Part shown: positions 34,663 to 55,522 of the stretch, piece by piece
Layout: each line of letters opens with the position of its first letter
Position numbering within the stretch: position 1 is the first letter of the stretch
Notes under the pieces: model-generated
Database searches by the model: none
What the model was told of the DNA's origin: nothing
Seen by the model: the letters and a program-made list of their open reading frames with translations, nothing else
Translations under genes and position numbers: made by a program
From: Pocillopora damicornis
Taxonomy: Eukaryota
DNA: 64,000 bases
NCBI RefSeq assembly: GCF_003704095.1
Contig: NW_020847344.1
Location: 1-64,000 of the forward strand
Direction of reading: 5' to 3'

Positions 34663-37600
34663 TCACTCTTGATCAGCTGTGTTGTTGCTGTTACAGGAAA
34701 TAAAATCTTGAACTTGACGAACAAACTGAAGAAACTCAGGCAACTCGGCACAGATTGTTAATGGTTCCCAGTCGCGTTCGTTGAGGAGCTGATCCCATTT
34801 TTCACAATGAAGGTGAATATCCGTCTAAGGGTATGAATGATTGAAAAGAAGTGAATAGAGGAAAAAGAGAAGTTAGCTCGAAAATAAATGAACCTCCTAG
34901 CTAACGACACCGCTAGCTGACGATTCAAACTAATTGAAAAGATATTTTAAAAAAATTCGGGTAATTTAATGAGGAAAAAATTTCTTTTTAACGATTAGAT
35001 TATTCGCTCTCGATTTTTTTCACGTGATATCGAGTGAGGGCAGAAATCGAAAGCGAATAATTTAATCCTTTCACTATAAATCTACTACTCGTTGAAAACG
35101 TAACATCGAGACGGGCTCTTTTTTCATTTTATTTTGTTTGGAACTGTACATTGTTAGGTCACCTCCTGTGCTCTGTGACTATCGCGGAAATAAATAGCGA
35201 GAAGCGTAGTTACTCAGATTGCACCAATTGTGATTGAACGCTAAATTTGTACTAAAATAAGTCGTAATATAACTGTGTTGTTAACGACAAATCTCCTACC
35301 GTCACTCTGTTTTCCTCATCTTTGAGATCACTGCACCAGGATCTTTCATCAGAGACAATCATGGTAAATCCAGGCCGAGGGGTGAACAAAGTTCGGCGGG
35401 AACATCTCCGATGAGTAAAGTTAAATCCTTGGGGTAATTTCTCGTCTTCTGGAAGGCGTAACCCGTCGGCATCGGAGAATGTCAACTTAGAAAGATAATT
35501 TGATATGAGGTGTGTCGCTTCTTTCTCGCGCACAAGGCTGTTGTTAGCAACTAAATCATCTGAGGAAAAAAAAAAGCCGTTGGATTAAACATTAGTATTT
35601 ATGTTGGTTTCGCATTCATAAACTCACTCACTAGCCCGTTATTTAATCAACTTTCCAAATATGCTAATAGTTTCAAGATTTAAAGTATATTTTTCGTGAG
35701 TTTTAGGCTATAAAGTGGCCATCTTGCGTTGCCAAAATTTATTCCAACAGAAACTTGGCTCTTGCAAATGAAACTGGACTGTTGACCCAAAAAATCGACC
35801 AAAATATTAACATAGGAATAATTTCATACTTATCACATTTGCAACAAGGGAGGGAAATATCAATTCACCTCTTACTTACTCACTCACTTTCTCGTTTTGC
35901 TCGCTCAGTCAGTCAGTAAATCAAAGGGAGTGAGTTTCCAAAGTAACTGTGGTGGTACGTCAGTGGGGTAGGCAGGTCAGTAGTCAGGAGGTCAGTCCAT
36001 TGGTCAGTCACTGAATGACTCATTCACTAAGTAATGCATATGTGATATGACACACACAGACAACTAGAGATATAAGACCTTTCGTAGACTCACCCGTAAG
36101 TGCACGCAAGCTTATCCTGCAATCAACGTCTGAACCTGGAAAAATGATGTTAACCTGGAGAAATTTCTTGGACTGTAAAACCAGCCACCCTCGACACCTC
36201 GCCCTTGTGGAATCATCCTCAAACCGCAGTTCTTCAACAACATTTTTCAGGTCATGGAAAGGAATCGGTATTTCTTCAAGTTTCTTTCCCACATCTTTAT
36301 TTGCTACCCATACCTAAGTTGTCATGAGAAAAAGCCACTTAAAAATTGAAAAAAGCCAAACATGAATAATTGAGAGAACGCAAATTTTCTTAATACATAT
36401 AAGGTATTGTAGATGTCCAACAAATTACAAAAAATTGTGGATGAGAAAGTTTTGAATCAATGAAACTCAACATTTATCAGTTTTTTAAAGCGTGTTTTCC
36501 TGAACTGTTCTGAACCTATATAAGAAGGAAATTAATTTGCTCAGCAATCCCCATTTAGCTTTCCTATCATTATTTTTGTATTTTATTATGCCTCTGCTCT
36601 TGTATGCATGCACTATGGACAAGCATTCATTAAGGGAAACTACATTGCATTATGGGTACAGTTAACCTCTTGTACGTGAATGTGTATATGACTTCGAAAC
36701 AGAAACCGGTTCATGTCATTTCAAATGGTGAAAGTGGTAAACTTGCCTTACATCGCATTGCTTGGCTTTTCGGGGACAAAAACGTCAAGTCATATCTTGC
36801 CATGAAGTCCTCCCCTATCTGATCACCAAATGTATCGCTCACCACTTTGTCAGCAAGGTTCACGCCCTCTTTAAATGCCACAAGCCATTCGTTTTTTTTC
36901 TGTTCTGTTCTTTGAAGCTTGTTGAGTGAATCAGCAATGCTCCACGTCTCCTCGAGGTCGGCTGTTGACAAATGTAGTTTTCTAATTACTTGATGTTACA
37001 TTGTCAAAATGGTGTCTTTTCAGCTATGCAGACCAGGCCCAATTCCTTTAAAATTAACCAATCAACGACAAGATTTTTCGCCCGCGATTTCTATCCCGTG
37101 ATAGTTAGTAAGGGTGAAGCTCGAAGAAACTATCTCGCATAGAAATTGAAAGCGAATAATCTAATTTCCTTCAGCATAAATCTACTAATTACCCAAAACT
37201 TAACAACAAGACAGGCACAAGTTTTTATTTTATTTTGATAACAACCATACAATGTTAGGTAACTCACGTTACTCACCATCCCGGAAAAGATAGCGAGTAA
37301 CGAAACGCTTAAACTCGAAACGTCATCTTTAGAAACCCTTTATTGTGACCCAATTTATGTTATCAACCCAGTTAATAAAACCAAGTNNNNNNNNNNCCAG
37401 AGCTTCTTTAGAAACTTACCCCCTTTACCCCCTTTATCTAGCGAGTACAATAGCCAATCAGAATAAGGAATTTGTGATAGGACGATAACTAATGTATGCT
37501 AAACACTAAACTGTGATGGATGATACTTGTGTCAATGGACGATAGGCTTTCCCTTAACAATTTTGAAAGAGAACTTAGAATTCTCCAGTTAATTATGATA

Positions 37601-39985
37601 GGAAAGTCAGCTAACGCCTTGTTTATGGAGAACAAACATTACACCGCAGCGTTCTCATGACGAAGAAAGGAAGGCAAAGGTAGAGGTACCTGTGTTTTAC
37701 ATCCCAGTAATCTACTCATCTATTAATTATAAATTACTTAAGCCTTACCTTCGTCTGGATCCCGAATGACGATTTTCCCTAAATGACACCACAGGTCAGC
37801 TTTGTGATAATTTCCGGACCCAATTTCCATTTTCAATTTCCTTAAGGATGTTAAAACTGTTTCGTTTATGGATGCATCATATTTTGCGACAGCTTGATTG
37901 AGCGCATAAGCTCCCTATAATTAAAATCGATCTTGTCAGATAGGGAAGCATTTCTTCCGTTGGGTTATTGTTTTTGTTTTGTTTTTGTTTTTTCCAGTTG
38001 CTTTGCCTTAGGATTATATCTAAAGTCTCGACGCCCATTACCTCCTTAATCTTGAAAATAAAACTAACTAAGCATCAGTAGTCAATTAGCTTGGTCATTA
38101 ACCTTATCCGCGTCTATTATTTAACCCTGAACGGTTTTTTTTTGGCAACGATATACCTGCACTGAGACAGAATTATTGCGGAGTGTTCAGCCATAAACAC
38201 CTTTCACCATTAGCCACTTTTTGCACAAACCTGTACAACCATATCGTATTCTTCACAAGGTTTCAAGCGATACTGTGATGAACTTCCTGCTGAAAGTATT
38301 AAGCGCTCCATTTCCTCAACAGGGACAAGCTGTAATTCACAATCTTCCGGGAGATTTTTATCGTCTATAAAGACGCAAATTCTGTTAGCCATGACTCTTC
38401 CCGCGGCCTAAAACAGAGCGAAAAAAACTAATCTGCCATGGATTTCTATGGAACTAGGGTTTACAATCAATGCAGGAAAATTGTTGACCTAACTGAAAAA
38501 AAGAGCTCCCCTCTGTGCTATAAATAAAAGAGATATCTCACATTTGGCAGGGTATCCAAAATCTTATTTTCTTTGACATGAAATAATGTCAGTGTTAAAC
38601 TCACCATTCTGCTTTTTATCACATACTCGGCATGCTTTGTGTTTCTCTTGGATCCACTTACATACAGCCGATGATCGGGTCCTATTGAACTTACTGCAGC
38701 TCCAGTCATAGTGCTAACATGTTGAAGATGGTCTCCATCTGGTCCTCTTACTAGTTTCTCAAACTTTTTTGGAATCACAATCGGTCGACCAGGGACGCTT
38801 TGATTTCTTGATAGAGTTTCCTTTGGAATCGAAAGTTCGTAAGAATGTACAATGTTTACAGAGAGTAGGAAAAGCAGGTTCTCACATACAAACAAAAAAC
38901 AGAGGCAGAAAGAAAGACATGACGACAAACAGAATCAGCGATAATTGACAACCACGCATGATCACGACTGTCTATTTAATTGGGTACCAAGCAAACTGAT
39001 TGACTGACTCTGGCTGAGATCATGACTGACTTCATTTCGGACTGATTGATTTACTGCATAACTTGTACTTATTGCAATAAGTTATACATCGGCGAAACAG
39101 GAAGACGACTAGGTGACCGATTCCAGGAACACCTTCGCGACGTGGAAAGAAATGACGAGGACGCATCCAAACCAGTCGCTAGACACTTTAATCTTCCTAA
39201 TCATTTTAAACAGCATATCGCAGTTTGCGCCCTTTCCTTACATCTAGGCAGTTCGGAAAGCCGTAAACCACACTAGAACAAAAATTTATCTTCCAAATCG
39301 GCACCCTTAATCCCCACGGAATCAACGAGCGCTTTTCCTTCAACTAATTTATTTCTGTTTTCTTGTCACCATATTCCCACCAATGGCGTAGCTCCACTTT
39401 TTGCATATAAACCCACACACAACCCACAATTCCTCCAATCGCTCTGACGAAGGGCTAACGCTCGAAACGTCAGCTTTTTTACCCTTTACGGTGGCTAACT
39501 TACGTTTTTCAACTCAGTTGTTAACACTAAATTACCTGCTGTACTCTCCCACCGACGCAGCACCTCAGTTTCTTTAGAAACTTACCCCTTTATTCATTTG
39601 ACTAAATGAATGACTAACTAGCTGACTAACAATCAGATTAACTGTATTCAAATAAATACAGATACTAGAAAATAGGAAAATCTAAGGAGTTACGACTACA
39701 GAAAAAGTTCCACTTCCTTTAATAGCTACCTACCAATTTCTTGTGAATTAACTCTTTTGCACGGGCCCTTTGCCTCTCATTACCACGAATAGCGAATCCG
39801 ATGCGACCTTCTTCTGACTGAGTACTGATCTTCGCCCCTGACGTTTCTTGTATTTGTTTTACTGTACTTCCTTTCTTGCCGATTATGAAGCCAATGTGGT
39901 TTTCAGCTACTGGTAGAAAATCGCAGGCTTCCTCTTGAGTGCTCCTTCTGAGATCGTCATTTGTATTTCTGTTCAGAACAGCCAT
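34663..39985 (-). CDS. KH-KH + putative TTM/CYTH-like domain protein, paralog A, 8 coding exons, ~555 aa
   Basis: Exons 39985-39734 (KH1, IIGKKGSTVKQIQETSGAKI), 38820-38605 (KH2, GPDG), 38407-38231, 37914-37749, 36961-36747 (GC donor), 36313-36094, 35559-35300, 34824-34663. The frame is open throughout and intron phases are identical to paralogs B and B'. Further upstream exon(s) are possible. Confidence 0.85.
34995..35215. repeat. Hairpin-containing interspersed repeat, second copy at ~37070-37300 (two introns of KH paralog A)
   Basis: Shared agaaat(c/t)gaaagcgaataat(t/c)taat...cataaatctacta...aaaac...tgttaggt...atagcgag, with a left arm agattattcgc complementary to gcgaataat. Confidence 0.6.
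37305..37430 (+). repeat. Degenerate Penelope terminal fragment
   Basis: ctcgaaacgtca...ttatcaacccagtt...ctttagaaacttaccccttt resembles 39461-39590. Contains a 10-N gap. Confidence 0.55.
39046..39595 (+). mobile_element. 3' remnant of a Penelope-like retroelement (GIY-YIG endonuclease fragment + terminal region) in intron 1 of KH paralog A
   Basis: IYCITCTYCNKLYIGETGRRLGDRFQEH is the Penelope GIY-YIG signature. It is frameshifted near 39270 and followed by a hammerhead motif. Confidence 0.9.
39441..39474 (+). ncRNA. Minimal type-I hammerhead ribozyme of the Penelope element
   Basis: gct-CTGACGA-agggctaacgctc-GAAA-c-GTC-agc: conserved core CUGANGA/GAAA/GUC, gct/agc stem I and a minimal palindromic stem III, as described for Penelope-like elements. 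Confidence 0.8.
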
Positions 39986-41814
39986 TATGGAAAATGTTTT
40001 TATTCTCACGTCATTTGCTAACAGCCCTCTAAAAATATTTACTTATTAAAAGCAACATAATGTAACAAGGAAACAAGAAATAATTCTCGAAATTGCAAAA
40101 TAAAGCCTGGAAACGTCCAGGCTTCGACGGGGCTCGACTCCGAGCCTTCACCTGGAGCACCCCTTAGTGTTTGACTCTCTGTCCTAGTTTCACCCTGAAT
40201 ATTTACATAATAAGGTGTGGAGCTTGCCAATCACACAGAGATTATGAGGAAATGCGAAAAAAAAAAAGCCACACAGATACGGCATTTGAAAAAATTGCGC
40301 AAATATACAATTTAAACTTTGTCGCTGACACAACAAAACGTTAACCTACATTGAAGTAATAAGTCATTAATAATTCATCTGTTACCCTGAAGGAACTGGT
40401 TATTATTATCGCCGTGGAAGGGGTCACGATAAAATTTTCATGATCCCTGTAAGGCTCTGTAATATTTTTGTCATCGCTCCATTAGCAATTAATCAGCAGT
40501 CAATTTTCTACTGATCCCCGTCAGCTACCCCTGANNNNNNNNNNNNNNNNNNNNNNNNNNNNNNNNNNNNNNNNNNNNNNNNNNNNNNNNNNNNNNNNNN
40601 NNNNNNNNNNNNNNNNNNNNNNNNNNNNNNNNNNTTGTCACTCCCTTTTTCCATGGTGCCGTTAAAATTATTCTTGTGTTGATAAATACAACTTGGCAAA
40701 CTAGAAACTTACACCATTTTCGAATGTCTATCATTCCTAAACCGGAAGTACTTCCGTTCTCGCTTCATTACCTTGACCCCAGTCCTCCCGGAACCGAGCG
40801 GTCAAACATTTTGCGAGTAAATAATCTAAGAAACAAAGTTAAGAAAAAAGGAAAGTACGGAAGCTGCTATCAAAATAACCAAAAAAGGGCCTTAATGTTC
40901 CTATGATGAGGAATATACATGCATCATGCGTCATCGCTGTGATAAGGGAAATGCATTTTTAAAGCCAATTTTTATCTTTTAAAAATATAAATTCCAAATA
41001 ATATTTATCAACATTACAAGGCCACATTAATACCCTTACTATTTATCAACATACATTCATCATGAAAACCAATCTATCCATTTACCTTTTATTGGTAAGT
41101 TTTTTTCGATGATTCAGGGATGAGTCTATAGTTATAGACTGCGAAGCACGTAAAAGGCACAGAGTGCATAATATCAAATACACGTCGTGTGTAACTAACT
41201 GTTTGACAGCCAATTGCTTTTCTCTTTTCGTTAGAGTTTAAAATGAAAGTGTCATAAACTTGACAAATGGATCTGTTTAATGACAAAGTGTTTGTCAAGC
41301 AAGGGATCGTACATGACTTTCCAGCTGGTTTCGAAAACGTGAAAAAGCTGTACCACGCTTCATTGTTAACTCACGATTTATTCACTTGATTTGATGATTT
41401 TACAACAACGCTTCGATTAACTCCCACTCACAACTCTCAGCTTATTCGAAAGAAACACACACAATGTCCCGCTGTAAGCACGTGCCAGAACAGTGCCATG
41501 TATGGGGCGATAAAACAGGTGCCGTATACATGTTGTTTGGTTATATATAGATTAACCGAAATCAAATCAAATTAAAGAATGCTTAACGTATCGTACAGTT
41601 TCCAACACTTAAGTTATTTTTTTGTATTTACAAATTTAAAGAATATAGGTTTTCCACTGTCCATCAGGCGCTCAAAGTTGTGCCGTTGCATCATTCCATC
41701 AAGCGCGTACTGCGTAGAATGGTAATGACGTCTTCTTGAGCCGCAGATTGAAGAGCATTCACATTTAGTTAATCTATTACATTTTAGTTATTAATCTCTA
41801 TACGCATCGTATAT

Positions 41815-42183
41815 TTAATTCTGCTCTTCAATTGTTTTTGGCTGACTTTCGCCTCCAATAGCCTCTTCATGAGGAGCCACGAGTGACTGAACTTTTCTCA
41901 GAAATTTTAGGAACGTCGGTAGCTTAGCAACGATCTGCTCTGGTTTCCAGTCTCCTTCATCAAAAGCGTCATCCCATTTTTTACAATACAGATGAATGTC
42001 CGTCTTTTTCACACAAAATCGAAAAAAAATAAATAAGAAAAAAATTAAAGCCCGTAAGACTTCCTTTGACTCAAAACAGATGACTAAAGGACTTAAAATG
42101 TGGGATAGTCAATCACTAACGAAACAATCAAGCTAACTGGTTTCAAAGCTGACGTTTTAGGCGTTGTCCTTTCGTCAGGGCTA

Positions 42184-42214
<31 letters not shown>

Positions 42215-45200
42215 GAAACTCTTAACGGTGGCCAATTAACGCTATCATCACAGTTGATGATGATACCAAATTGACTCTCTGAATGACTGATTGACGAATT
42301 GAGTGACTGACTGGCCAACTGGCTAACTAGCTTAATGTTTTGCTAGAGGAATGGCTAGTAGACTAGCTGGCGGACTGGCTAGCGGACTGACTGGCGGACT
42401 TGCTGGCGTATTGGCTGACTGATGAACTGATAGGGTTGACTAATTGACTGACTGACAAGCTGCCTGACGTATTGGTTGGCAGACCGTGATTGTCTGAGTA
42501 GCTGATTAACAGACTGACAGACTGACCGACTGACCAACTTTCAAATTAGCTGACCAGCGGACTGACTGGCCAAATCAGAGTTCTACAGTCGCTTTAATTT
42601 AGATATACTGAATGACTGTTCAGTATCAACTGCAGACGAGTGACATGGATCATAACACAAACAGCGGTGTATGACTAACATGGACGAAGAGAAAGCATAG
42701 CTTGATTGTAGTGATACGTACCCTTACTTCGGTTTCGTCCAAACTCCATACATCATTGTGATCAATATTTATGTCTTTAGCTTGCTCTTTACAAACAGTC
42801 AAGGCAAACTGTTCTTCATCCGTTGTTTCGTACTGGTATGTTCTTCTCCGACTGCGACGGCAGTAAAAAAGTTCAAATCCATCTGGAAGCTCGGAGGTTG
42901 GTGGTAACTTCAGTTTACTTTGATCAATCTTCATGTTCATCAAATAACTTTCAAGAATTCTGTCTTCTTCTTCAGCTTCTGGTGTCTGCGGAATATTTGG
43001 ATCTTGACAAAAATAAAAAGACATACTTTTAACTGAGACAATGTGATGTTTACAATGTGATACTTAGTTCCTTCCGTTATTTTTTTTCAGTGTTACTCTC
43101 CGTAAAAACTAGTCCCTTACACAGTCGAGCGTTTTTGACTTCATGATTTTTCTTCTGAGGTTCAGAAGAATAAATCATGGAGTCAAAAACGCTACTCAGT
43201 GCTGTAAGCTCCATTCATTAATTATTTTTTTGGTCGGTAAAACTGATGGCAAATATCATCCAATATTTCGCTCTTCTTTCTTTTTTTCTACCTTTTTAAA
43301 TGTCATTCGCAGTAAGTTTTCCATCCGCAATTAAAAAACTTATGAAATTAAAAGTTAATGCCGCTGAGAGCTGCGAGAAGCTGTTTATTACGTCTTTCTT
43401 GTCATAATTCACAGACTCACATGTTCTTATCGACAAACGGCAGTCAAATCCCTTGGAAGGCATCAAAATGTCTGCTATCATTCTTTGTTGAAAGTGAGAA
43501 TAAATATGGAAGCATGGTTCGTTCGATGTTCTTCTGGTCTCGTCTTCGGTTAACACACGAGTTAAGATGTTTTTAACAGGAATAGAAGCATTGCGAGAGA
43601 ACATTAGCGAAGGAGCTGTAGCACCCTCGTCCTCAGAATGTTCCTCCACCAGCCATGCCTGGCATAAAGAGAGAAACCAGAAAATTTGGGGAATTAAAAA
43701 CTAATTCCAATCAGTCTTTATTCAGGGAAGTAGACAGGCTTCTCTAAAAACAAGTGACAGTTTTTCCGGTGTCTTAGTTCCTCAGCGATGGGAGACTTAT
43801 TCCTTTAATTAAGAGGCTAGAATATAATTTAAGAGATTTTAACAACATACAGTTAACGTCCCTAATAAGGACAAACTGTCCGGATTCCTTAGAGACCATA
43901 TCGTTTTCACTGAACCTTGCAGATATAAACGAGAATACCCCTCTTCATTTCCTATTTGGCGATACTCGAATGTGTTTGATCAGAAGTAAAAATTCTTTTT
44001 TCCAGAAAGGACAATCCAAGTCCAGCGTCAGATGATGAAGAGAATCCTACGATATATATGGATGTTCTTATCTATTCTATTTACAGATTTAAAATACCTC
44101 AACACCAATATCTCGGCAAGAAGGAGTGTAGAATGCAAAGTCATATCTGATATCTTCAGTTGATGTGAAAGATTCAAGGTCCTTCTCAATTGCCTCAACT
44201 TCCATTCTCAAGACGCCTTCCTTGAAGATTGGCTTCCAGCTATTGCCATCCGCAGATTCAACTTTTTCTTGGATCTCCTTCAGGGTAAAAGTGTCTTCCT
44301 CTTCATCTGCAGCAACAGAAAAACCAAAGAAATAAAATCTTAGATTGACACCTCCACATTCCACTTTAATGCGAGTTACAGAACCAGGCGTTTTCGTTAA
44401 TCTTCTAATCCGATTTAAGATACTTCATCAGAGATTTTTCGATCAATTCATATGCTCCTTGTCCCTCTGCGGTGTTGTCCCCCCCTTTCCCCATTTCTCA
44501 CCTTCATCAATCTTAGTTATATAGGCGTGACCGAAACGACTCTTCATTTCTATCTTAACCTTGCCCCCTTCCACCTCCTCTTTGTGAATTTGTTTTAAAA
44601 CTCCACGGATCTTTTCTTTCAGACTTTCCGTGTTAGCAAAATCATCTGTTTCCTGTTAAGAAACAAGATGATTGTATTAATGTCTTTTGTAATAATTGTT
44701 GGATGTTGCTTGTTTTATTGCTTGGGAGGTTCATTTTTGTTTAGACGTTCTTGTCGATTCCCCTCAGTTTAAAAGTCGTTGTGTGCTATGACTTCATTAA
44801 AAAATCAAGCTTTCCGAAGTTATGAGCAAGCAATATGTCATTTCTCCAAATAAAAGAAACGACTTTAAACGAACGGCTGGGTCGACTTTCGGCGAGGAGG
44901 CTCGGAAGATTCCATCATAAGCCTGGTTTCTAGAAATGTCATGACAAAGGCGGGACAAAATGTGTTGAGAGCAAATACAGAAATGGAGAATTTCTGTAGT
45001 TATTGTCTTGTTCTAGGGCTATAGTTCTTTTTCATGTGGAGGTTTACAGCGAACACGTAGGAGGGCTTGCAACATGATAGGTCGAAACCTTCAGTTACCT
45101 ACTCATCGTATGAAATTAGTAATGTTTATATGTAGTGAATGATGTAGTCTAAACTGTGGCTAAAATTGAATGATTGATTTTCTAAGCAGTAACATTCACA

Positions 45201-47235
45201 ATATGTTTGTATGCATGGATCATTTTCTTTATTTAAGGTTAGCTTAGGGTTAGACAGTCGTTTTTTATACTAGATCAGCGAAAAGTCGGGCAGACCTTTC
45301 CTAGAGGATGTCCCAGTAGCTTTAGTTGGAAGGACTTATCTCCAGAGTCGGTGACTTGATCTGATTGTAGCTTCGAATTCTGCAGCTCAAACTCGTGGTT
45401 TTCTTTCAGCTGAGCAGTGTCCACGAAAACAAACCTTGCCGAAGGTTCAGTACTCTCTGAACGTTTCATTGCAAGATTCTTAAATGAAAAAAAAAATCGT
45501 TAATTGCTAATGGAGCATCACAACAGATCTACGTCCAATACTAAGAGCCTCTGGCTCGGAAGACTGTGCAAACACCTCCCACGTCTTCGACATTCAATAA
45601 AGCCACTGAATCCCTAATTTCCTATCGAGAGCCTTCTTGGGCTTACTCTCGTTTTTGGAAATCCCAGAGTGTGATGTCATGTCGCGAAGGTAACCCACGC
45701 TGAAATCCTCACTCGTTCTTCACCAAGACATTCAGGTAGCACGAGAGGTGAGCATACCTTAATTTTTAAGATAATTTGAAGAGGGATTACCGTTGTTACG
45801 AGGCCTTAAAATGTCTCTCTTAAAAGTGGGAGTCTCATTTGTATTCTAATACACTTATGTAAATTAGCCTACAGGGCCTTGACAGCACGTAGAAAACAAC
45901 GATAGAATTTTCTCCCCTAAGGGGAGGTTAAGATTATGTTCTGACCCTTTTTTTACTTGCGCACAAAAGACTGATAATTATGCCTGCAATTTTAAGAGAG
46001 GTCTTCCAGGTGGATTTGGATCCTTTGTCGTAAAACCAAAATTAACATAGTCGCAACAGCCAATCAGAAGAAAGAATGATGACACAGGGACACCAATACA
46101 CACTTACCACGATGGCCTTTATTTCTCTTATTGCTTTTTTTTCGCCCTCTCTTGGTCCTTTGAAGTACAGGCCAGGGCTGCTCCTGAAGGCTTTTAGAGT
46201 TACACCAGTCTTAGTTGAGATATTGTTCAACTTCTCATGTCCTTTCCCAATGACAACACCCATGAATTTGTCAGGTATGTCAACGTTGAGCTTCTTGAAC
46301 CCGCCTTTTTCGTTGTCTTGAGTACCCTACGGATCCGAACAAATATATAAACGTGTCTAGACTTGAAAAAAACCTAGGGAGAGAGAATACACGCAAGCTT
46401 TGAAGTTCTTGAGAATTTATATGTATAATTTGTGTAATAGTGATATTTGAATGTTGGGTAGCTGATGAAATTAAGGGAAGTTCAATGGTGGATCTGGAGA
46501 GTATAAAAGCAGCAGGCTGAGGAAAACTTGCCGTAAGATAGCCACCTCATTCATACCAATATTACATTTATATTAAATAAAAATACCTGCTTTCAAAGCA
46601 GTAAAAATCCAAGTGCCGAAAAAAGAGGGGCTCTGTGAGAATTTTACAGTCAAACCTCTCGACGTAGGTATCGATCTTTTTTTGTGGGTGATTTGCAACC
46701 CTCTTGGTTCTTTGATAAAAGTTTGTTTCTTAATTCGAAAACAAAAACATCCAATGTACAGTATCTAGAACAGTCAAGCGATTTGATAGTTCAATGGACA
46801 CTGAGTTAGATACAGACACTCGGCCTCCTTTCACCCACCAGCTCTTACCGTCACGATTTCTTTTATTATCTTTTCTGCATTTTCACATTGTTCTGCAGTG
46901 GAAAATTTGAGGAGTTACGTCTATATAAATAGTTCCACTTCCTTTAGTAGCCACTTACCAATTTCTCATTGATTAGGTCTCTTGCACGGGCCCTTTGCCT
47001 CTCATTACCACGAATAGCGAATCCGTTGCGACCTCTTTGTGACTGAGCACTGATCTTTGCCCCTGACGTTTCTTGTATTTGATTTATTGTACTTCCTTTC
47101 CTGCCGATTATGAAGCCAATGCGGTTTTCAGCTACTGGTAGAAATTCGTAGCCTTCCTCCTGAGTGCTCCTTTTAAGATCGTCATTTATATTTCTGTTCA
47201 GAACAGCCCTTATGGAAAAATGTTTTTATCCTCAT
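41815..47235 (-). CDS. KH-KH + putative TTM-like domain protein, chimeric paralog B' (A-type exon 1 + B-type exons 2-8); start codon defective in this assembly
   Basis: Exons ~47210-46959 (copy of A exon 1, GRKG KH), 46326-46108, 45478-45296, 44652-44502, 44306-44098, 43658-43421, 43002-42722, 42003-41815. All are open with intact splice sites. The A-type ATG reads AGG at 47208-47210, and the upstream ATG at 47235 is out of frame by one base. Confidence 0.7.
42139..42275. repeat. Penelope-terminus-derived inverted repeat with two degenerate hammerhead motifs back to back; paralogous copy at ~50588-50712
   Basis: gtttcaaagctgacgtt...ttcgtcag / ctaacgaagggctaacgcttgaaacgtcagctttgaaac forms a hairpin and matches the sequence at 39441-39530. 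Confidence 0.7.
42280..42570. repeat. Degenerate (GACT/GGCT)n simple repeat; paralogous copy at ~50715-50970
   Basis: Runs of gactgact/ctggct in intron 7 of B' and B. Confidence 0.75.
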
Positions 47236-47964
47236 GTCATTTACTAATACCCCTCTAAAAATAATGACCTTATAAGATTAACATAATCAATGAAAGAAAC
47301 AACAAATCATTCTCGAAATTACAAAATAAAGTCTGGAAACGTTCAGGCTTCAATGGGCTCAACTCCGAGCCTCCCTCTGAAGCCCCCCTTAGTGTTTGGC
47401 ACTCTCTCCCAACTTCACTCAATATATTTACATAATAAGGTGGGGAGCTTGCCAATCACGTAGGAATTACAAGGAAATGCAAAAACCAGCCACATAGATG
47501 CGGCATTTGAAAAATTTGTATAAATATGCAATTTAAACTTTGTTGCCGACACAACAAAACGTTACGCTGAGATACATTGAAGTAATCTGTCATTAATCAT
47601 TCATTTATCCCTCTCCAGGGATTGGTCACGAACGACAAACCAAATGAATCGAAAATAAGAGTAAACAGAAATTTAAATAGGAATAACAGGTGCCTCACAG
47701 TGGCGGCCTCACAAGAGAGACAATGAGACAATGTGAGGTTTATTTATCATTATGCGACAATGTTAGACAGATGCCGATACTTCGTTCCTTCCGAAATCGA
47801 AAATAAGAGTAAACAGAAATTTAAATGGGAATAACAGGCGCCTCACAGCGGCGCCCTCACAAGGTAATTTGGGAAAAATAATGTTTCTCGCTTGATGTGA
47901 GGGTTGACGAGATCTCTGTGAATGAAAATTCCTCTGACGAGGAACTAGTCGTGAATATTAATAT

Positions 47965-48382
47965 CGGTGTGACTAAATGCCTGGCAGCCGGGAACGTTCT
48001 CAAAAAAACTAAATGCCTGGCTGTCAAAAATTTTCACGCAACTCCCACCGAAAGGTTCCTTCAAACTTCTTAAGAGTATTAGATGTTTGTTAAGAAATGT
48101 CAAGCGATTACAAAAATTAATTTAGTTTTCCGTGGACAAATTCTCAGAGTTTGTTTATATCGCTCGACAACCGAGCGATATCATAGTGTGCACAAGCTCT
48201 GAGAATTTGTCCACTTAATAACCAAATAAATTTTTGGAATTGCTTGACATTCCTTAACAGACATTTGATTTTCTTAAGAAGTTTGAAAGAACCTTCCGGC
48301 GGAAATTGCGTGAAAATTTTTGACTGGCGGGCACTCAGTCTATTAGAGACCGTGCCTGGCTGCCGGGCATTTAATTACACCG
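47965..48382. mobile_element. ~420-bp imperfect palindrome (foldback/MITE)
   Basis: Arms pair along their whole length: cggtgtgactaaatgcctggcagcc with ggctgccgggcatttaattacaccg, aaaaattttcacgcaa with ttgcgtgaaaattttt, gtggacaaattctcagag with ctctgagaatttgtccac. Centre tatcgctcg-acaac-cgagcgata. Confidence 0.85.
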
Positions 48383-48574
48383 TATAAATACTCCTTGCCC
48401 ATTTAAACCGTCAGTTCGAAATTCATTTGTTTTACCTCGCTTTGCTGCCATTCGTCGATTCCTTGCGACTTTCACTCCTTTTGTCCATGGTGCTATTAAA
48501 ATTATTCTTTTACTGACAAATAAAACTTAGCAAAGTAGAAACTTATACCAATATCGATGTCTATCATTCCTAAA

Positions 48575-48599
48575 CCGGAAGTACTTTCGCTTTCGCTTC
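48575..48599 (-). promoter_or_regulatory. Ets site (CCGGAAGT) abutting an ISRE-like element (GAAAGCGAAAGT) in the putative B' promoter
   Basis: ccggaagtactttcgctttcgcttc matches GAAANNGAAA. The paralogous site at 40742-40766 keeps the Ets site but not the ISRE. Confidence 0.5.
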
Positions 48600-50277
48600 A
48601 TTATCTAGACCCCAGTCCTCCCGCACAGAACGGTTAAACATTATGCGAGCAAATGATTTAAAAAGGAAAGTTAAGAAAAAGGAAAGTACAATGGCTGCTA
48701 CCAAAATAACAAAAAAGGGCCTAAATGTTCCCATGTTGAGGAATATACATGCATCGTGCGTCATCACCGAGATAAGGTAAATGCATTCCTAGAGCCAATT
48801 TTTGTCTTTCAGTATTTCAAATTCAAAGTAACATTTATCAACACTAACTGGCCACATTAATACCCACATTATCACCATACAGTCATCAAGGAAACCAATC
48901 TTTAGAGTATCCATTTACCTTTTAGTGGCGAGTTTTTTTTCGATGATTCAGTTCTGAATTTGTTCTCGAAGTTATAGCTTGCAAAGCGCGTAAAAGGCAC
49001 GGAGTGCATAATATCAAATACACGTAAGAACTCACTGTTTGACGGCCAATTATTTTTCTCTTTTCGCTAGGGTTTAAAATGAAAGTGTCATAAACTTGAC
49101 AAATGGATCGGTTTAATGATAAAGTGTTTTTTAAGCAAGGGATCGTACATGACTTTACTGCTGGTTCTTCAGTGTAATGTCCGTATTATTATCACCACTA
49201 AACTAATGGACGTATAAAGGAAAAACAATTATAACAACATGGACAATGAACAATACAATGTTGACTTAAAGTTTGAATAATTATTCTTGAATAAAACGAT
49301 GAAAGACACATCTGTGTGTACATTATGGTCACAGCCAATAGTTTTTCGCAAATGCGAAATGTGTAACAGGTACATTAATTAAAAAAAGAACTTGTAATTC
49401 TTGTAAGCAATTGATTTTAAATTGTACAAACGCTTCCAAAAAGATTGTTCTCATTTATATGAGGATTAATGACAAACTCTACTTTAAACTAAAATTATTA
49501 AAAATCAAACCCTGAAAGTTTTAGCACAACCCAGGTGTGGCCAGATGGGGATAAATTTTTTACAAAACTTCCAACAGCTTTTTTAATCAAGCAGTTTTAA
49601 TAAAAATCAAGTAACCCTGGATGAAAAGCTGCTCACGCGAAAAAAAAAAAAGCTGCTCACGCGAAAGTTGGTCGTAAGGAGCCGACAATACTTCTGATGT
49701 AGGTTTTTATCATATGCTGTTTTTTTGGTTTTTTGTTCTTTATGCTGTTCATTGTATTTAGTTTTCAACAGGGCCGTTATACAAACCACGTCAGGGTGGC
49801 ACACACCTTGTATAAACTCTTTCTCAAAACATCAAGCTTCGATGGTGCAATTAAATGCAGTTAAGATTTTCACATTCTAAAATAGGATGTGTACATTCAC
49901 TAAAATCAAATTAGAAACGGCGACGCAGGTACTACAGGAAAGATAAACAAAGTTTCTTTCTCAAGATCAGTCGTGTGACTAGATGACCTCTCTCATCACT
50001 GTAAATGCTCTCTCCTAAAAAAGCATAGCCTTTCTTGCTATTAATTTCAGTTATTTTTTTTGTATTTACAAATTTAAAGAAAATGAGTTTTCCACCGTCC
50101 ATCAGGCGCCCAAAGTTGCGCTGTTGCATCCTTGCACCAAGCGCGTGCTGCGCAGGATAGTAATGACGTCTTCTTAGTTAAGCCGTGGATTGAACAGCAT
50201 TCACATTAATCTATCACATTTTAGTTATTGATCTCTATGCGTATCATAGATTTAGTCCTGCTCTTCAGTTGCTTTTG

Positions 50278-53200
50278 CTAAAATTCGTCTCTAATAGCCT
50301 CTTCATGTGGGGCCACGTGTGACTGAACTTGTCTCAGAAATTTTAGGAACGTCGGTAGCTTGGCAACGATCTGCTCCGGTTCCCAGTCTCCTTCATCAAA
50401 AGCGTCATCCCATTCCTTACAATGCAGATGAATGTCCGTCTTTTTCATAAGAAATCGAAACAAAATTAAACAATAAGAAAAAAAACTAAAACCCGTAAGA
50501 CTTCTTTTGACTCAAAACAGATGACCAAAGAAATTAAAATGTAGGATAGTCAATCGCTAACGAAACAACTCACTTGACAGCTAACTGGTTTCAAAGCCGA
50601 CATTTAAGCTTAAGCCTTTCGTCAGGGCTAACGCTCGAAACGTCAGCTTTGAAACTCTTAACGGTGGACAATCAACATTATAAGCTTAGTTGATGATGAT
50701 ACCAAATTGACTGTCTGAATGACTGACTGACTGACTGAAAAACTGGCCGACTTGCTGAATGTTTTGCTGGCGGACTGGCTGGCGGAATGGTTGGCGGACT
50801 GGCAAGCGGACTGGCTTGCTGACTGAGTGATAAGGCTGACTAATTGACTAACTGACAAGCTGCCTGACTTATTGGCTGGCAGACCGTGATTATCTGAGTA
50901 GCTGATTAATAGACTGACTAACTGACCGACTGGCCAACCTTCGAATTAGCTGACCAGCGGACTGGCTGATGGGTTAACTGGAACAGCTACTGTTTCACAT
51001 CGTAGCGATACGTACCTTTACTTCTGTTTCGTCGAAGCTCCATACATCACTGTGATCAATATTTACGTCTTTAGCTTGGTCTTTACAAACAGTCAAAGAA
51101 AACTGTTCTCCATCCGTTGTTTTGCACTGGTATGTTCTTCTCAGACTGCGACGGTGGTAGAAAAGTTCAAATCCACCTGGAAGCTCGGAGCTTGGTGGTA
51201 ACTTCAGTTGCCCTTGATCAATCTTCATGTTAATCAAGTAACTTTCAAGAATTCTGTCTTCTTCTTCAGCTTCTGGTGTTTGCGGAATATTTGGACCTAA
51301 ACAAAAATACAAAGACACAGTTTTAACTGAGACAATGTGAGGTTTATTTATCATTATGCGACAATGTTAGACAGAAGCCTATACTTAGTTCTTCCCGTTA
51401 TTTTTTGACAATGTTACTCTCCGTGAAAACTAGTCCCTTACAGAGTCGAGCGTTTTTTCATGGAGTCAAAAACGCTACTCAGTGCTGTAAGCTGCTTTCA
51501 TCAATTATTTTTCGGTCGGTGAAACTAATGGCAAATATCATCCAATATTTCGCTCTTTTTGCTTTTATTCTTCCCTATTTAATGTCATTTGCGGTAAGTT
51601 TTCCATTCGCAATTAAAAAACTCATGAAATTAAAAGTTAATGCCGCTGAGAGCTGTGAGAAGCTGTTTATTACGTCTTTTTTGTCATACTTCACAGACTC
51701 ACATGTTCTAATCGACAAACGGCAGTCAAATCCCTTGGAAGGTATCATGATGTCTGCTCTCATTCTTTGTTGAAACTGAGAGCACATATGAAAGCATGGT
51801 TCGTTCGATGTACTTCCGCTCTGGTCTTCGGATGACACACGAGTCAAGACGTTTTTGACAGGAATAGGAGCACTGCGAGAGAACATAAGCGAAGGAGCTG
51901 TAGCACCCTCGTCCTCAGAATGTTCCTCCACCAGCCATGCCTGGAATAAAGAGAGAAGAAACAAAATTTGGTGAATTGAAAACTAATCCAATCAGTCTTT
52001 ATTTAGGGAAGTACACAGGCTTCTCTAAAACAAGTGACAGTTTTTCGGTGTCTCAGTTCCTCAGCTACGGGAGACTTATTCCTTTAATTAAGAGGCTAGA
52101 ATATAACTTAAGAGATTTTAACAACATATATTTCACGTCCCTAAAAANNNNNNNNNNNNNNNNNNNNNNNNNNNNNNNNNNNNNNNNNNNNNNNNNNNNN
52201 NNNNNNNNNNNNNNNNNNNNNNNNNNNNNNNNNNNNNNNNNNNNNNNTAATGATGAATAGAATCCTACGATATAAATGGACGTTCTTTTCTACTCTATTT
52301 ACAAATTTAAAATACCTTAACACGAATATCTCGGCAAGAAGGAGTGTAGAATGTGAAGTCATATCTGATATCTTCAGTTGCTGAGAAAGATTCAAGGCCC
52401 CTCTCAATTGCCTCAACTTCTATTCTCAAGACGCCTTCCTTGAAGATCGGCTTCCAACTCTTACCATCCGTAGATTCAACTCTTTCTTTGATCTCCTTCA
52501 GAGTAAAAGTGTCTTTCTCTTCATCTGCAGCAACAGAAAAACAAAAGAAATAAAATCCTAGTTTAACACCTCCACATTCAACTTTAACGTGAATAACAGA
52601 ACCAGGCGTTTTCGTTAATTTTCGAATACGATTGATGATACTTCCTAAAAAATTTTTCGTTCAACTGATACGCTTCTTGTTCCTCTACAGTGTCTCCCCT
52701 CCCCCTCTTTCCCCATTTCTCACCTTCATCAATCTTGGTTATATAGGCGTGGCCGAAATGACTCCACATGTCTATCTTAACCATACCCTCTTCCTCCTTC
52801 TCTTTGTGAATTTGCCATAAAACTCTGCGGATCTTTTCTTTCAGACTTTCCGTGTCAGCAAAATCATCTGTTTCCTGTTAAGAAACAAGATGATGGTGAA
52901 GTCTTTTGTAATAATTGTTGGTTGTTGCTTGTTTTATTGCTTGGGAGGTTCATTTTGTTTAGACTTTGTAGTCGATTCCCATCAGTTTAAAAGTCGTTGT
53001 ACGTTAAGACGTCATTGAAAAATCAAACTTTCCGAAGTTATAAGCATGCAATATGTCATTTTTCCAAATAAAAGAAACGAATTTAAATGGAAAGGGTGGA
53101 TCGACTTTCGGCGAGTAGGATCACAAAATTTCATCATAAGCCTGGTTTCTAGAAATGTTTTGACAAAGGCGAGACAAAATGTGATGAGAGCAAGTACGTA

Positions 53201-55522
53201 CAGAAATAGAGAATTTCTGTAGTTGACGTCTTGTTCTAGGGCTGTAGTTCTTTTTTATATTGGGGTTTAGAGCGAACACGTAGGAGGGCGAACTTACAAT
53301 ATGATAGGTCGAAACCTTCAGTTACCTACTTATAGTGTGAAATTAGTAACGTTTATATGTAGTAGATGGTGTAGTTTAAACTGTGTTGGTGAGATTGAAT
53401 GATTAATGTTCTAAGCAGTAACATTCACCATATGTCTGCATATATGGATCATATTCTTTATTTAAGGTTCGCTTGGGGTTAGACCGTCGTTTTTTAAACA
53501 AGATCAGCGAAAAATCGGGCAGACCTTTCCTAGAGGATGTTCCAGTAGCTTCAGTTTGAAGTAATTATTTCCAGAGCCAGTGACTTGATCTGATTGTAAC
53601 TTCTGCAACTCAAACTCGTGGTTTTCTTCCATCTGAGCTGTGTCCATGTAAACAAACCTTGCTGGAGGTTCAACGTTCTGTGAACGTTTCATAGCAAGAT
53701 TCTTAAATGAAAAGAAAACCGTTACTTGTCAATGGTGCATCACAACAGACTTACGTCCAATACCAACAAAGCCGTCAGGACACTGAATCCCTAATTTCCT
53801 AACAAGGGCCTTTTTGAGCTCGCTTTCGTTTTTGGAGATCCCAGAGGAAGGTGTGATGTCATGTCGCAAAGGCAACCCACGCTGAAATCCTCATTCGTTC
53901 TTCACCAAGACATTCAAATAGCACGAGAGGTGAGCATACCTTAAGTTTCAAGATAATTTGAAGTGGGGTTACCTTAATTACGAGGCCTAAAGATGTCTTT
54001 CATAAAGGGGTGGTTTCATTTGTAGTCTATTACAATTTATGTAAATTAGCCTTCATGGCCTTGACAACATGTGGAAAACATCGACAAAATTTTTTTCTCT
54101 AGGGGGAGTTTAAGAGTATGTTCTGACCCCTATTTTCACTTGCGCACAAAAGATTGATAATTATGCCTGTCACTATAAAAGAGGTCTTCTGGGTGCATTT
54201 GGATTCTGTGTCGTAAAACTGAAACTAACATAATCACAACAGCCAATCAGAAGAAAGAATGATGACACAGGGGGACCAATACACACTCACCACAATGGCC
54301 TTTATTTGTCGTATCGCTTTTTTTTCGTCCTCTCTTGATCCTTTGAAGTACAGGCCAGGGCTGCCCCTGAAGGCTTTTAGAGTTACGCCAGTCCTAGTTG
54401 AGATATTGTTCAACTTCTCATACCCTTTTCCGATGACGACGCCCATGAATTTGTCAGGTATGTCAACGTGGAGTTTCTTAAACCCGCCTTTTTCGCTGTC
54501 TTGAGCACCCTGCAGATCAAAACAAAGACATAACCGTATTTAGACTTAAAAAGAAATCTTAGGAGAGAATACACACAAACTTTGAAATTCTTGAGAATTC
54601 ATACATATAACATATGTAATCTGTGATATTTGAATGGTGGGTAGCTAATGAATACATACATACATACTTTATGAACGTGGTTGACACTTAGCTATATAAA
54701 GCTAGTTTACAGGTCAGTCACGAAAGAAAAGATGAATTACTAAACCTTGAAGCTATATAAAAGTGTAAAATGACGTAGTATTATGGAACTGCATAAAATT
54801 ATAGAACTATTAAACGTATGAAAACTAGGTTAAATGGCGAATAAGGTCAAGATCTATAAACCTACAACCATATTAAAGTGCTTAAAATAATATATTTAAG
54901 CAAATAAGGGAATGAAATTAAATATGAAATTGAGGGAAGTTCAAAGGCGGATCAAGAGAGTTAGCAGCAGGCTGAGGAAAACTTGCGGTAAGATGGCCAC
55001 CTCATTCCATACCAATATTACATTTATATCTAATCAAAACACCCACTTTCAAAGCAGTAAAAATCTAAATACCGTAAAAAGAGTGGCTCTATTAGAGTTT
55101 TACAGTCAAACCTCTCGACGTAGATATCGATATTTTCTGTGAGGGATTTACTACCCTCTTATTTCTTTGATTTAATTTTGCTTTTTAATATAGAAACAAA
55201 AGCATCCAGTGTACAGTATCTAGAACAGGCAGGCGATTTGATGGATCAATTGACACTGAGTTAGATACAGACACTCAGCTTCCTTTTCCCACTAATGAGC
55301 TCTTACCGTCACGATTTCCTTTATTATCTTTTCCGCATTTTGACATTGTTCTGCCGTGCCTCTCACGAGCGCTTGATTTTCTTTATTAATTGATAGCTGG
55401 ACTCCGGTTTGCTCTCTGATTTCTCTTATTCTTGATCCTTTCCTTCCTATGACAAGTCCAACTTTGTCTTTGGGGATTGGAATCACCCTTGTCACGACTG
55501 TGCGTCCTTGTGTATTCGACAT
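50278..55522 (-). CDS. KH-KH + putative TTM-like domain protein, paralog B, 8 coding exons, 550 aa
   Basis: Exons 55522-55307 (KH1, VGLVIGRKGSRIREIREQTGV), 54509-54291 (KH2), 53701-53525, 52874-52724, 52524-52316, 51940-51703, 51296-51016, 50439-50278. Continuous ORF with GT-AG introns. Confidence 0.88.
54650..54910 (-). mobile_element. Copy-specific insertion with a (CATA)n end, probable 5'-truncated LINE tail
   Basis: Absent from the paralogous intron at ~46465 and begins with atacatacatacatactttat. Confidence 0.4.

Follow-up and report, generated by a model that had tools for sequence, protein, structure and literature searches.

A tandem array of genes for two KH domains joined to a predicted triphosphate-tunnel module in the coral Pocillopora damicornis

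We analysed a stretch of 64,000 nucleotides from the stony coral Pocillopora damicornis (NCBI RefSeq assembly GCF_003704095.1, contig NW_020847344.1, positions 1 to 64,000 of the forward strand), called "the window" below and always meant at its full length. Its minus strand carries three paralogous genes, which we call copies A, B and C. Copies A and C encode two KH domains followed by a module of about 390 residues, for which structure prediction supports the fold of the triphosphate tunnel metalloenzymes (TTM); the closest known structures are the RNA-binding proteins RESC1 and RESC2, followed by the RNA triphosphatase Cet1.

Three paralogs in tandem

Each paralog has eight coding exons and the intron phases are 0,0,0,1,0,1,0 in all of them, which bears out the statement of an earlier reading of this DNA, made from the letters only (the sequence-only reading), that three paralogs with identical exon phases lie here. 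The span of 34663-55522 given there needs no correction, as it runs from the TGA of copy A (34663-34665) to the A of the ATG of copy C (55522). That the three paralogs encode KH-KH-domain proteins holds fully for A and C, while copy B has no start codon; likewise, all the conserved motif blocks that had been listed are found in A and C in the stated order, and copy B departs from them, reading E-M-K-S-R-F-G, C-R-R and T-D-I-H-L-Y-C. Copy A has 555 codons, copy C 550, and copy B 573 codon positions counted from the site homologous to the ATG of A. A and C are 31% identical over 510 aligned codons, and C and B 82% identical over exons 2-8. The alignments indicate that the likeness of the paralogs exceeds chance and that the motif blocks are near-invariant in 40 anthozoan proteins. 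All coordinates are collected in Table 1.

The seven introns of copy C are all seen as joints in RNA-seq contigs (runs X1, X5, X9 and X13, from four different studies). These joints read CT..AC on the plus strand, hence GT..AG on the minus strand, and the exon frames are open. Copy C is an expressed, spliced gene. The exon ends of copy A were placed by the orthologs P0011, P0101 and P0030 only. No exon frame of copy A contains a stop, and every residue that is invariant in the family is kept. The donor of its intron 5 is GC (AAG/GCAAGT, window 36745-36746) where B and C have GT, which points to a GC-AG intron.

Copy B is composite. In DNA alignments, its segment 47604-46900 is 85% identical to A 40378-39675, and from 46900 downward it is 85% identical to C from 55358 downward, that is, from inside exon 1 of C. 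At the junction (window 46840-47260), the A-type KH1 exon with its GT donor ends at 46959; about 60 bp past this exon stand the last 52 bp or so of a C-type exon 1 with its own donor, ending at 46849. As its 5' part is A-like and its remainder C-like, it looks as though copy B arose when C and A were unequally exchanged. An AGG occupies the position of the ATG of A, and the open frame 47225-46947 contains no Met. Six sites which are 82-100% conserved in the family are altered (D to E, W to K, H to R, R to G, K to E and H to Y). For exons 2-8, compared with C, the ratio of nonsynonymous to synonymous substitution rates (dN/dS) is 0.46; for exon 1 (KH1), compared with A, it is 0.87. Judged by these comparisons, copy B is a decaying or diverging chimera of A and C.

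The array contains three assembly gaps, none of which touches a coding exon (Table 1). We considered that exons might be concealed in these runs of N; this was ruled out by the continuity of the orthologs in copy A and by the in-frame RNA joints in copy C.

Two observations concern the introns. In intron 7 of copy C, a short repetitive element (50591-50787) is covered by RNA contigs 10-40 times as deeply as the exons are, in each of the four runs, and loose ends abound at 50624-50672; similar stretches stand at 42366-42545 in B and at 39451-39520 in A. The element looks like a dispersed repeat transcribed at many other sites. Intron 1 of copy A contains, antisense to the gene, an open reading frame of 76 aa (39046-39276, plus strand) resembling a GIY-YIG nuclease motif (Y-I-G-E-T...R...H), which is presumably a fragment of a mobile element.

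Table 1. Features of the window (strand and helix names refer to the predicted structures)
Feature	Position	Strand	Remarks
Copy A, "A type" KH-KH-TTM gene	34663..39985	-	ATG 39985-39983, TGA 34665-34663
A exon 1: KH1, GKKG loop	39734..39985	-	Pfam KH_1 E 1.9e-13; GT donor, phase 0
A exon 2: KH2, GPDG loop	38605..38820	-	Pfam KH_1 17.4 bits, below cut-off; junction agrees with orthologs
A exon 3: three-stranded N-terminal sub-domain of tunnel module	38231..38407	-	strands 44-83 of the P0011 model, within the RESC1-matched range 42-430
A exon 4: long helix and first tunnel strand D-L-W-C-H-L-G, then P-D-E	37749..37914	-	intron 4 phase 1
Assembly gap in A intron 4	37387..37396	.	between 37749 (end of exon 4) and 36961 (start of exon 5); orthologs continuous across exons 4/5
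A exon 5: W..AFKEGV, R-Y-D and R-C-K strands; GC donor	36747..36961	-	orthologs
A exon 6: D-C-R-I-S-L-R strand	36094..36313	-	85-89% identity with P0011
A exon 7: helix insertion and H-R-R-C-S-R-R strand	35300..35559	-	orthologs
A exon 8: last tunnel strand T-D-I-H-L-H-C and C-terminal helices (W-E-P)	34666..34824	-	orthologs
Assembly gap, intergenic, A to B	40535..40634	.	upstream of the ATG of A (39985), downstream of the stop of B (41815-41817)
Copy B: A-type KH1 exon joined to C-type exons 2-8	41818..47210	-	DNA alignment to A and C
B exon 1: A-type KH1, no start codon	46959..47210	-	Pfam KH_1 E 3.4e-14
B exon 2: KH2	46108..46326	-	mapped from C by DNA alignment; frame open
B exon 3	45296..45478	-	mapped from C
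B exon 4: first strand E-M-K-S-R-F-G	44502..44652	-	mapped from C
B exon 5: R-x-K strand now G-x-E	44098..44306	-	mapped from C
B exon 6	43421..43658	-	mapped from C
B exon 7	42722..43002	-	mapped from C
B exon 8: T-D-I-H-L-Y-C, longer tail, TAA stop	41818..42003	-	mapped from C
Copy C, "C type" KH-KH-TTM gene	50278..55522	-	ATG 55522-55520, TAG 50280-50278; RNA joints
C exon 1: KH1, GRKG loop	55307..55522	-	Pfam KH_1 E 3.2e-16
C exon 2: KH2, loop shortened to G-K-G	54291..54509	-	Pfam KH_1 20.7 bits, cut-off 21.5; beta-alpha-alpha-beta-beta-alpha in the P0123 model
C exon 3: N-terminal sub-domain of tunnel module	53525..53701	-	RNA joints, P0123 model
C exon 4: long helix and first strand D-M-W-S-H-F-G (codons 52772, 52766, 52760), then D-E	52724..52874	-	RNA joints
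C exon 5: W..IFKEGV, R-Y-D (52366, 52360), R-V-K (52324, 52318)	52316..52524	-	RNA joints
Assembly gap in C intron 5 (51941-52315)	52148..52247	.	spliced RNA of all four runs joins 51940 to 52316 in frame
C exon 6: D-C-R-L-S-I-R (51727, 51721, 51709)	51703..51940	-	RNA joints
C exon 7: helix insertion, H-R-R-S-L-R-R (51153, 51141)	51016..51296	-	RNA joints
C exon 8: T-D-I-H-L-H-C (50436, 50430, 50424) and C-terminal helices	50281..50439	-	RNA joints
Shared intergenic region, copy C to helicase	55523..56665	.	divergent genes
First coding exon, ZNFX1-family SF1 helicase	56666..57295	+	91% DNA identity with the start of a 1737-aa AAA_11/AAA_12 gene of P. meandrina

The KH pair and the fold of the C-terminal module

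Exon 1 of every copy encodes a clear type-I KH domain, while the exon 2 products of A and C score below the Pfam cut-off (Table 1). The part encoded by exon 2 is nevertheless predicted to fold as a second KH domain in the model of P0123, a C-type ortholog from Acropora palmata. Searched against the PDB sequences, the family profile spans the KH34 tandems of IGF2BP over both domains (E 5e-15), and the KH1 of the C-type model aligns with the KH domains of Nova, PCBP and FUBP at a VIA Z of about 11.5. Hence, the N-terminal part is a tandem pair of type-I KH domains (PF00013) with a GXXG loop, which in KH2 is complete in copy A and shortened in copies B and C.

The C-terminal 390 residues or so have no Pfam, PDB-sequence or NCBI name. 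We searched Pfam with the single exons of all copies (E <= 1) and with 44 full-length members of the family (E <= 10), and obtained KH matches only, none of them to PF02940 or PF01928 (CYTH). A search of the whole genome with PF02940 gave no match either, but its controls were silent too, so that it is weak evidence. In the PDB sequences (E <= 10), the 60 matches listed out of 82 for the family profile are all KH proteins, with no TTM and no RESC among them, and a single sequence gave four chance-level matches, again with no TTM and no RESC.

The picture is different for predicted structures. As stand-ins for the A and C proteins, we used orthologs from the databases whose structures were predicted (AlphaFold/AF2) from family alignments. 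The A-type ortholog P0011, from Pocillopora meandrina, is 71-89% identical to copy A per exon (model pLDDT 85.5, pTM 0.86), and the C-type ortholog P0123 is 36-61% identical to copy C per exon (model pLDDT 80.8). Both models show a long helix, then long antiparallel strands forming a barrel, then C-terminal helices. When compared to the PDB with Foldseek, RESC1 and RESC2 come first (E 4e-9 to 3e-8), followed by Pct1 (1e-5), Cet1 (1e-4), the mimivirus and Trypanosoma cruzi triphosphatases and then CYTH proteins. With VIA-align, the P0011 model matches RESC1 at Z 19.6 over 283 residues with a root-mean-square deviation of 4.2 (model 42-430, chain 154-468); a second alignment gives Z 19.0 over 285 residues, and RESC2 gives Z 16.8. 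The same model scores Z 14.8 over 228 residues with Saccharomyces cerevisiae Cet1, 13.2 with Schizosaccharomyces pombe Pct1, 11.9 with T. cruzi Cet1, 9.6 with the mimivirus triphosphatase, about 7.5 with the CYTH proteins YgiF and AtTTM3 and about 6.5 with the Mediator subunits Med18/20. Over all structural alignments, the ranges are 12.8-13.2 for Pct1, 9.8-13.3 for T. cruzi Cet1, 9.5-10.9 for the mimivirus enzyme, 4.5-7.8 for CYTH proteins and 5.5-6.5 for Med18/20. The C-type model ranks the structures in the same order, with RESC at Z 17.9 over 274 residues.

An exhaustive alignment to 48,161 PDB representatives, which is independent of Foldseek, returned six chains with Z >= 8: RESC1, RESC2, Cet1, Pct1, T. 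cruzi Cet1 and the mimivirus enzyme, all of them TTM. The neighbours found with a protein language model (ESM Atlas) are all PF02940 clusters, at a score of 0.84 which is below the 0.9 mark and makes them a lead only; the unnamed clusters of the Atlas gave no usable match. In the ortholog models of both subtypes we thus find the antiparallel beta-barrel tunnel flanked by helices which characterizes the Cet1-like branch. The degenerate triphosphate-tunnel domain (Cet1/CYTH-like) announced by the sequence-only reading is supported by the very structure prediction and fold search which it had proposed, and the TTM fold of the orthologs is supported by these models. A recent viral origin of the module was also considered, and is unsupported: in BFVD, giant-virus mRNA 5'-phosphatases match at E >= 1e-4, more weakly than RESC.

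Residues of the tunnel were compared in 40 aligned hexacoral proteins (37-40 per site; numbering of P0123). Conserved at 92-100% are D237, W239, H241, G243, D251, E252, W276, G283, R305, D307, R319, K321, D393, R395, R399, R450, R454, E473, D496, H498, W513 and P515. The whole set is retained in copies A and C but for position 473, which is D in C and unaligned in A. The invariant motifs D-x-W-x-H, R-x-D, R-x-K, D-x-R, R-x3-R and D-x-H-x-H stand on barrel strands. In the first strand, D-x-W-x-H-[F/L]-G, the D is found in 40/40 proteins, the W in 38/39 and the H in 39/39; in the last, D-x-H-x-H, both the D and the first H are found in 38/38, and position 500 is His in 31/38 and Gly in 7/38. On each barrel strand, the conserved polar residues are of one parity while the other parity is 90-100% hydrophobic. 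Such an alternation is expected for a charged tunnel wrapped by helices, and from this amphipathic pattern, not from coordinates, we infer that the invariant residues face inward and cluster in the tunnel.

The correspondence with Cet1 was taken from the order of strands and motifs, without superposition. By this order, D-x-W-x-H of the first strand stands at E305-x-E307-x-K of Cet1 and D-x-H-x-H/G of the last strand at E492-x-E494-x-E496, so that the glutamates of motifs A and C are missing. The metal ligands of Cet1 are E305, E307 and E496, and any single change abolishes activity (PMC10201420). At most one of these three carboxylates would therefore survive, by motif order, in the coral family. 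Seven Arg/Lys (R305, R319, K321, R395, R399, R450 and R454), 92-100% kept, lie on the polar face of five strands; they were compared, again without residue superposition, with R393, K409, K456 and R458, which hold the gamma-phosphate in Cet1. The earlier proposal that ExE motifs had been replaced by DxWxH and DxHxH while basic residues were kept fits both the conservation in the family and the pattern of the strand faces.

Relatives and genomic neighbourhood

Relatives were sought with the profile of exon 7 alone in a library of 1.84 billion proteins, plus one follow-up search and a cluster look-up. The profile returned 92 proteins, mostly exon-sized fragments with few of full length; two longer ones (P0049 and P0054) look spurious. 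The named relatives, annotated "uncharacterized" or "KH domain-containing", all belong to Hexacorallia: the stony corals Acropora, Montipora, Pocillopora, Stylophora, Porites, Oculina, Desmophyllum and Orbicella, and the sea anemones Actinia tenebrosa and Nematostella vectensis. A legume protein with a weak, KH-only match (E 2.4e-5, 7% query coverage) was not counted. The tunnel region of a Nematostella member, used as a query, found three proteins only, in a search whose reach is limited by its word filter. Montipora has proteins of both types, while the A type is also present in Stylophora and Pocillopora and the C type in Acropora; on this distribution, both subtypes are old and conserved across Hexacorallia. 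Literature searches returned no paper on a cnidarian KH-TTM protein, none linking a TTM with a KH domain, no mention of four Nematostella and two Stylophora genes of the family and, for cnidarian "triphosphate tunnel" work, nothing but an unrelated cilia paper. The sequence-only reading, too, knew of no described animal KH-KH-TTM protein.

Nematostella carries tandem arrays of the family. In the genome of P. damicornis (234,350,878 bases in 4393 contigs searched), family exons are found on seven contigs, which, judged by the matches, is a lineage-specific expansion. The six contigs other than that of the window are C374, C1005, C1395, C2178, C3881 and C4281, and C1005 seems to carry three or four copies within 20 kb. 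On the contig of the window itself but beyond its end, there is a partial A-type copy (exons 7-8, about 75.0-75.9 kb, minus strand) and a fourth complete copy, of the C type with eight exons (about 78.3-83.4 kb, minus strand).

Copy C stands head-to-head with a gene of the plus strand encoding a helicase of the ZNFX1 family (antiviral-type), at a distance of 1.14 kb. A helicase exon farther along the contig matches human ZNFX1 (NFX1-type zinc finger-containing protein 1, PDB 9q9z) with E 1e-23, Aquarius with E 2e-8 and UPF1 with E 1e-4, and a Walker A motif, GPPGTGKS, is found near 63700. As family copies lie on both sides of the helicase gene (those beyond it at 75000-83435), this gene is embedded in the KH-TTM array. 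The region shared by copy C and the helicase contains three TTCNNNGAA sites (GAS-type) within 72 bp, at 56305, 56344 and 56376 (region 56305-56384), when the rate in the window is 0.59 per kb, and a TGACGTCA site nearby. P. meandrina keeps two of the three (L002 1111 and 1150) as well as the TGACGTCA site. These motifs make the shared region a candidate promoter which looks STAT-responsive, and we take this as a lead only.

P. meandrina has these genes in the order found here (helicase, KH-TTM, MFS transporter), with a DNA identity of about 90%. The locus of that species has an intact A type, a C type reduced to exons 1, 7 and 8 (L002 1659-6051), which stands between the helicase and the A type, and no B; the C-type remnant reflects either a deletion or a collapse in the assembly. 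An obligate heterodimer of A and C was considered and rejected, since P. meandrina has an intact A type together with a mere remnant of the C type. The A-type gene model annotated in P. meandrina, P0011, lacks the KH1 exon, which is present in the DNA at L002 8736-8975. Downstream of copy A in the window, an MFS-type transporter gene (31589-33805, plus strand) is placed and oriented like a 400-aa MFS_1 gene of P. meandrina.

Proposed function and comparison with known tunnels

RESC1 and RESC2 are Cet1-like tunnels devoid of two of the three metal glutamates; their dimer binds RNA only if a 5'-triphosphate is present, and the tunnel of RESC2 holds the triphosphate nucleoside through K311, R359, R402 and R424, binding the 5'-triphosphate of guide RNA without hydrolysis (PMC10201420). 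The sequence-only reading had left two options for the coral proteins, an enzyme or a 5'-triphosphate sensor. The fact that the nearest structures are the catalytically dead RESC1/RESC2, and not Cet1, favours the second. We therefore propose, with about an even chance of being right, that the A and C proteins are readers of 5'-phosphorylated RNA ends in which a tunnel is tethered to KH domains. Two type-I KH domains, which bind single-stranded RNA, would be followed by a Cet1-branch TTM module of about 390 residues; in the manner of RESC2, the tunnel would take up RNA ends bearing a 5'-tri- or diphosphate, and would not hydrolyse them in the canonical, Mn-dependent way; contacts to the first nucleotide may come from the conserved Trp and His, and the adjacent single strand would be held by the KH domains. 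Such a protein would read or mark RNAs by their 5' end. As the family is lineage-specific, has many copies and a fast turnover, and stands head-to-head with a ZNFX1-family helicase, a role in RNA surveillance or defence seems more likely than a housekeeping one. What the data show are the structure of the genes, that C is expressed, the KH pair, the conserved residues, the genomic setting and, for the orthologs, the TTM fold; the geometry of the lumen, the ligand, the absence of hydrolysis and the biological role are what we infer here. A more specific version, which we regard as speculative and unlikely as a whole, is that the RESC2-like tunnel, tethered to its KH domains, picks uncapped 5'-tri- or diphosphate RNAs, either viral or made by an RNA-dependent RNA polymerase, and acts with the adjacent ZNFX1 helicase from the shared, STAT-responsive-looking promoter, as a non-helicase sensor of hexacorals.

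Several facts weigh against a reader of RNA ends. The models are those of orthologs, and the C-type proxy has just 36-61% identity per exon with copy C. There is no sequence-level link between the coral tunnel domain and any TTM family, and positions were equated with those of Cet1 by the order of the motifs and the place of the strands; even RESC is not superposable on Cet1 residue by residue (PMC10201420). The inward orientation and the clustering of the residues come from the strand pattern and not from model coordinates. The KH2 of the C type carries a shortened G-K-G loop. Finally, the near-absolute invariance of D237, H241, D496 and H498, from anemones to corals, resembles that of a catalytic or metal site.

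This last point brings in the idea of an active, non-canonical phosphohydrolase, which is the main rival and which we consider possible though rather doubtful. D237, H241, D496, H498 and H500 would together make up a novel site for a metal such as Zn, Mn or Co, and the enzyme would cleave the 5'-triphosphate of a KH-held RNA, or nucleoside triphosphates or tripolyphosphate; it could disarm or mark 5'-triphosphate RNAs. Except for H500, these residues do not vary in any of the 38-40 proteins compared at each site, which range from corals to sea anemones; they stand on the two strands which bear the metal ligands in Cet1, and the basic ring is kept; moreover, apart from RESC, the members of the Cet1 branch are all enzymes. 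As the lumen of RESC is loose when compared to this strict Asp/His invariance, the enzyme has to be kept in mind. However, we know of no active TTM without an ExExK-type motif. By motif order, the second metal glutamate is a Trp in 38/39 members and the third metal-ligand position a Gly in 7/38, while single glutamate changes are enough to inactivate Cet1 (PMC10201420), and the closest structures are the inactive RESC1/2. Should the tunnel instead sense a small phosphorylated ligand (tripolyphosphate or polyphosphate, a nucleotide messenger, an inositol pyrophosphate), its occupancy would tune the binding of RNA by the KH domains. The charged lumen is conserved, and tunnels of the CYTH and Vtc types do bind triphosphate, ATP and polyphosphate, the fold being common at Z 5-8; but the RNA-end-handling Cet1/RESC branch is much closer (Z 13-19.6), the fusion with two RNA-binding domains points to an RNA ligand and no particular small molecule is supported by the data, which makes this explanation quite improbable.

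To a ligand-free barrel serving as a protein-protein scaffold, with RNA contacted by the KH domains only, we give a very small probability. The likeness to the Med18/20 barrel (Z 5.5-6.5) would fit it, as would RESC1, the single best match, which is inert in that it binds no phosphate itself (PMC10201420). Yet two of the four phosphate-binding positions of RESC1 are non-basic when the basic set of the corals is intact, and a barrel that bound no ligand would hardly account for the seven basic and six acidic or His residues that are invariant on the polar faces of its strands. We can scarcely credit, finally, an ordinary mRNA-capping triphosphatase or a non-functional array of pseudogenes. The fold is that of the branch of the capping triphosphatases, copy B is decaying (no start codon, six invariant residues altered) and the C-type copy of P. 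meandrina retains exons 1, 7 and 8 only. Against capping, the canonical metal motifs are absent by motif order, the genes are multi-copy and KH-fused with no PF02940 match, and a normal guanylyltransferase exon is found elsewhere in the genome (on a contig of 2.1 kb); against pseudogenes, the frames of A and C are open, C is spliced in the RNA of four studies and the subtypes are conserved across Hexacorallia.

The fold as such is known. What is new is its occurrence in an animal, its fusion to a KH pair, a lumen with D-x-W-x-H and D-x-H-x-H, and the closeness to RESC1/2. An animal family with a tunnel fold is expressed, conserved and expanded, yet invisible to sequence profiles, and a domain of about 390 residues without a Pfam entry gains a name. 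If the proteins are indeed sensors of RNA 5' ends, no relatives of RESC1/2 outside kinetoplastids and no Cet1-branch tunnel of an animal would have been known before them, and 5'-triphosphate RNA would have a route of recognition independent of RIG-I. How early animals recognized foreign or self-made uncapped RNA would become a tractable question, as Nematostella has orthologs and genetic tools. The fusion with KH domains and the adjacency of ZNFX1 give a testable claim, namely the discrimination of 5'-triphosphate RNA from 5'-monophosphate, 5'-hydroxyl and capped RNA, with or without cleavage of the triphosphate.

When compared to known systems, the coral models are best matched by kinetoplastid RESC1/RESC2 (GAP2/GAP1; PDB 8CDP, 8FN4 and 8FN6), at Z 17.7-19.6 over 273-285 residues. 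These two proteins form the heterodimer that binds guide-RNA 5'-triphosphates in the RNA-editing substrate complex of the mitochondrion. The models fit RESC better than Cet1 because the match with RESC extends to the strands that precede the long helix (model 42-130), beyond the part matched by Cet1. The models also have, before the long C-terminal strands, a helix and two short strands at the place of the helix D / beta12-13 insertion of RESC. Judged by aligned ranges and order of elements, the models thus have the Cet1-like barrel with an N-terminal hairpin and a helix/strand insertion which is proper to RESC; two of the three metal carboxylates are lost (in the corals, by motif order) and basic residues are kept, as in RESC. 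The differences are no less clear. Identity in the structural alignments is 9-12% with no HMMER match, so that sequence homology is not established; RESC proteins are mitochondrial, have no KH domains and form an obligate heterodimer through a swapped hairpin; and their lumen motifs are unconserved, whereas the Asp, His and Trp of the corals are strictly invariant. RESC1/2 have no known relatives outside kinetoplastids (PMC10201420). The two lineages of eukaryotes being unrelated, common descent of a subfamily and convergence are both possible.

RNA triphosphatases of the tunnel type are as a rule confined to fungi, protozoa and large DNA viruses, and animals cap their mRNA with an enzyme of the cysteine-phosphatase type (PMC10201420, its ref. 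62). With the Cet1-type enzymes (Cet1, Pct1, those of T. cruzi and of mimivirus and giant viruses; PF02940), the coral module shares the barrel, the order of the motif strands and, as predicted from the strand faces, a charged lumen. It differs, by motif order, in its D-x-W-x-H in place of E-x-E-x-K (motif A) and D-x-H-x-H/G in place of E-x-E-x-E (motif C), and by being fused to a KH pair in an animal and devoid of a PF02940 match, when those enzymes are free or fused to a guanylyltransferase. RIG-I-like sensors recognize 5'-triphosphate RNA with a helicase and a C-terminal domain. The analogy with them is functional only: if the coral proteins read RNA ends, both would single out uncapped 5'-tri- or diphosphate RNA in an antiviral setting, with unrelated folds (helicase and C-terminal domain in one case, KH and tunnel in the other). 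The CYTH TTMs (thiamine triphosphatase, NeuTTM, YgiF, AtTTM3 and CyaB) have the same superfamily fold (Z 4.5-7.8), but the match is much weaker, they are smaller, and they have neither the accessory elements of Cet1/RESC nor an RNA-binding fusion, while the corals lack E-x-E-x-K. One of this group, the vertebrate CYTH pseudoenzyme Jhc1, is an animal case of a tunnel enzyme that has become non-catalytic (bioRxiv 10.64898/2026.02.04.703868).

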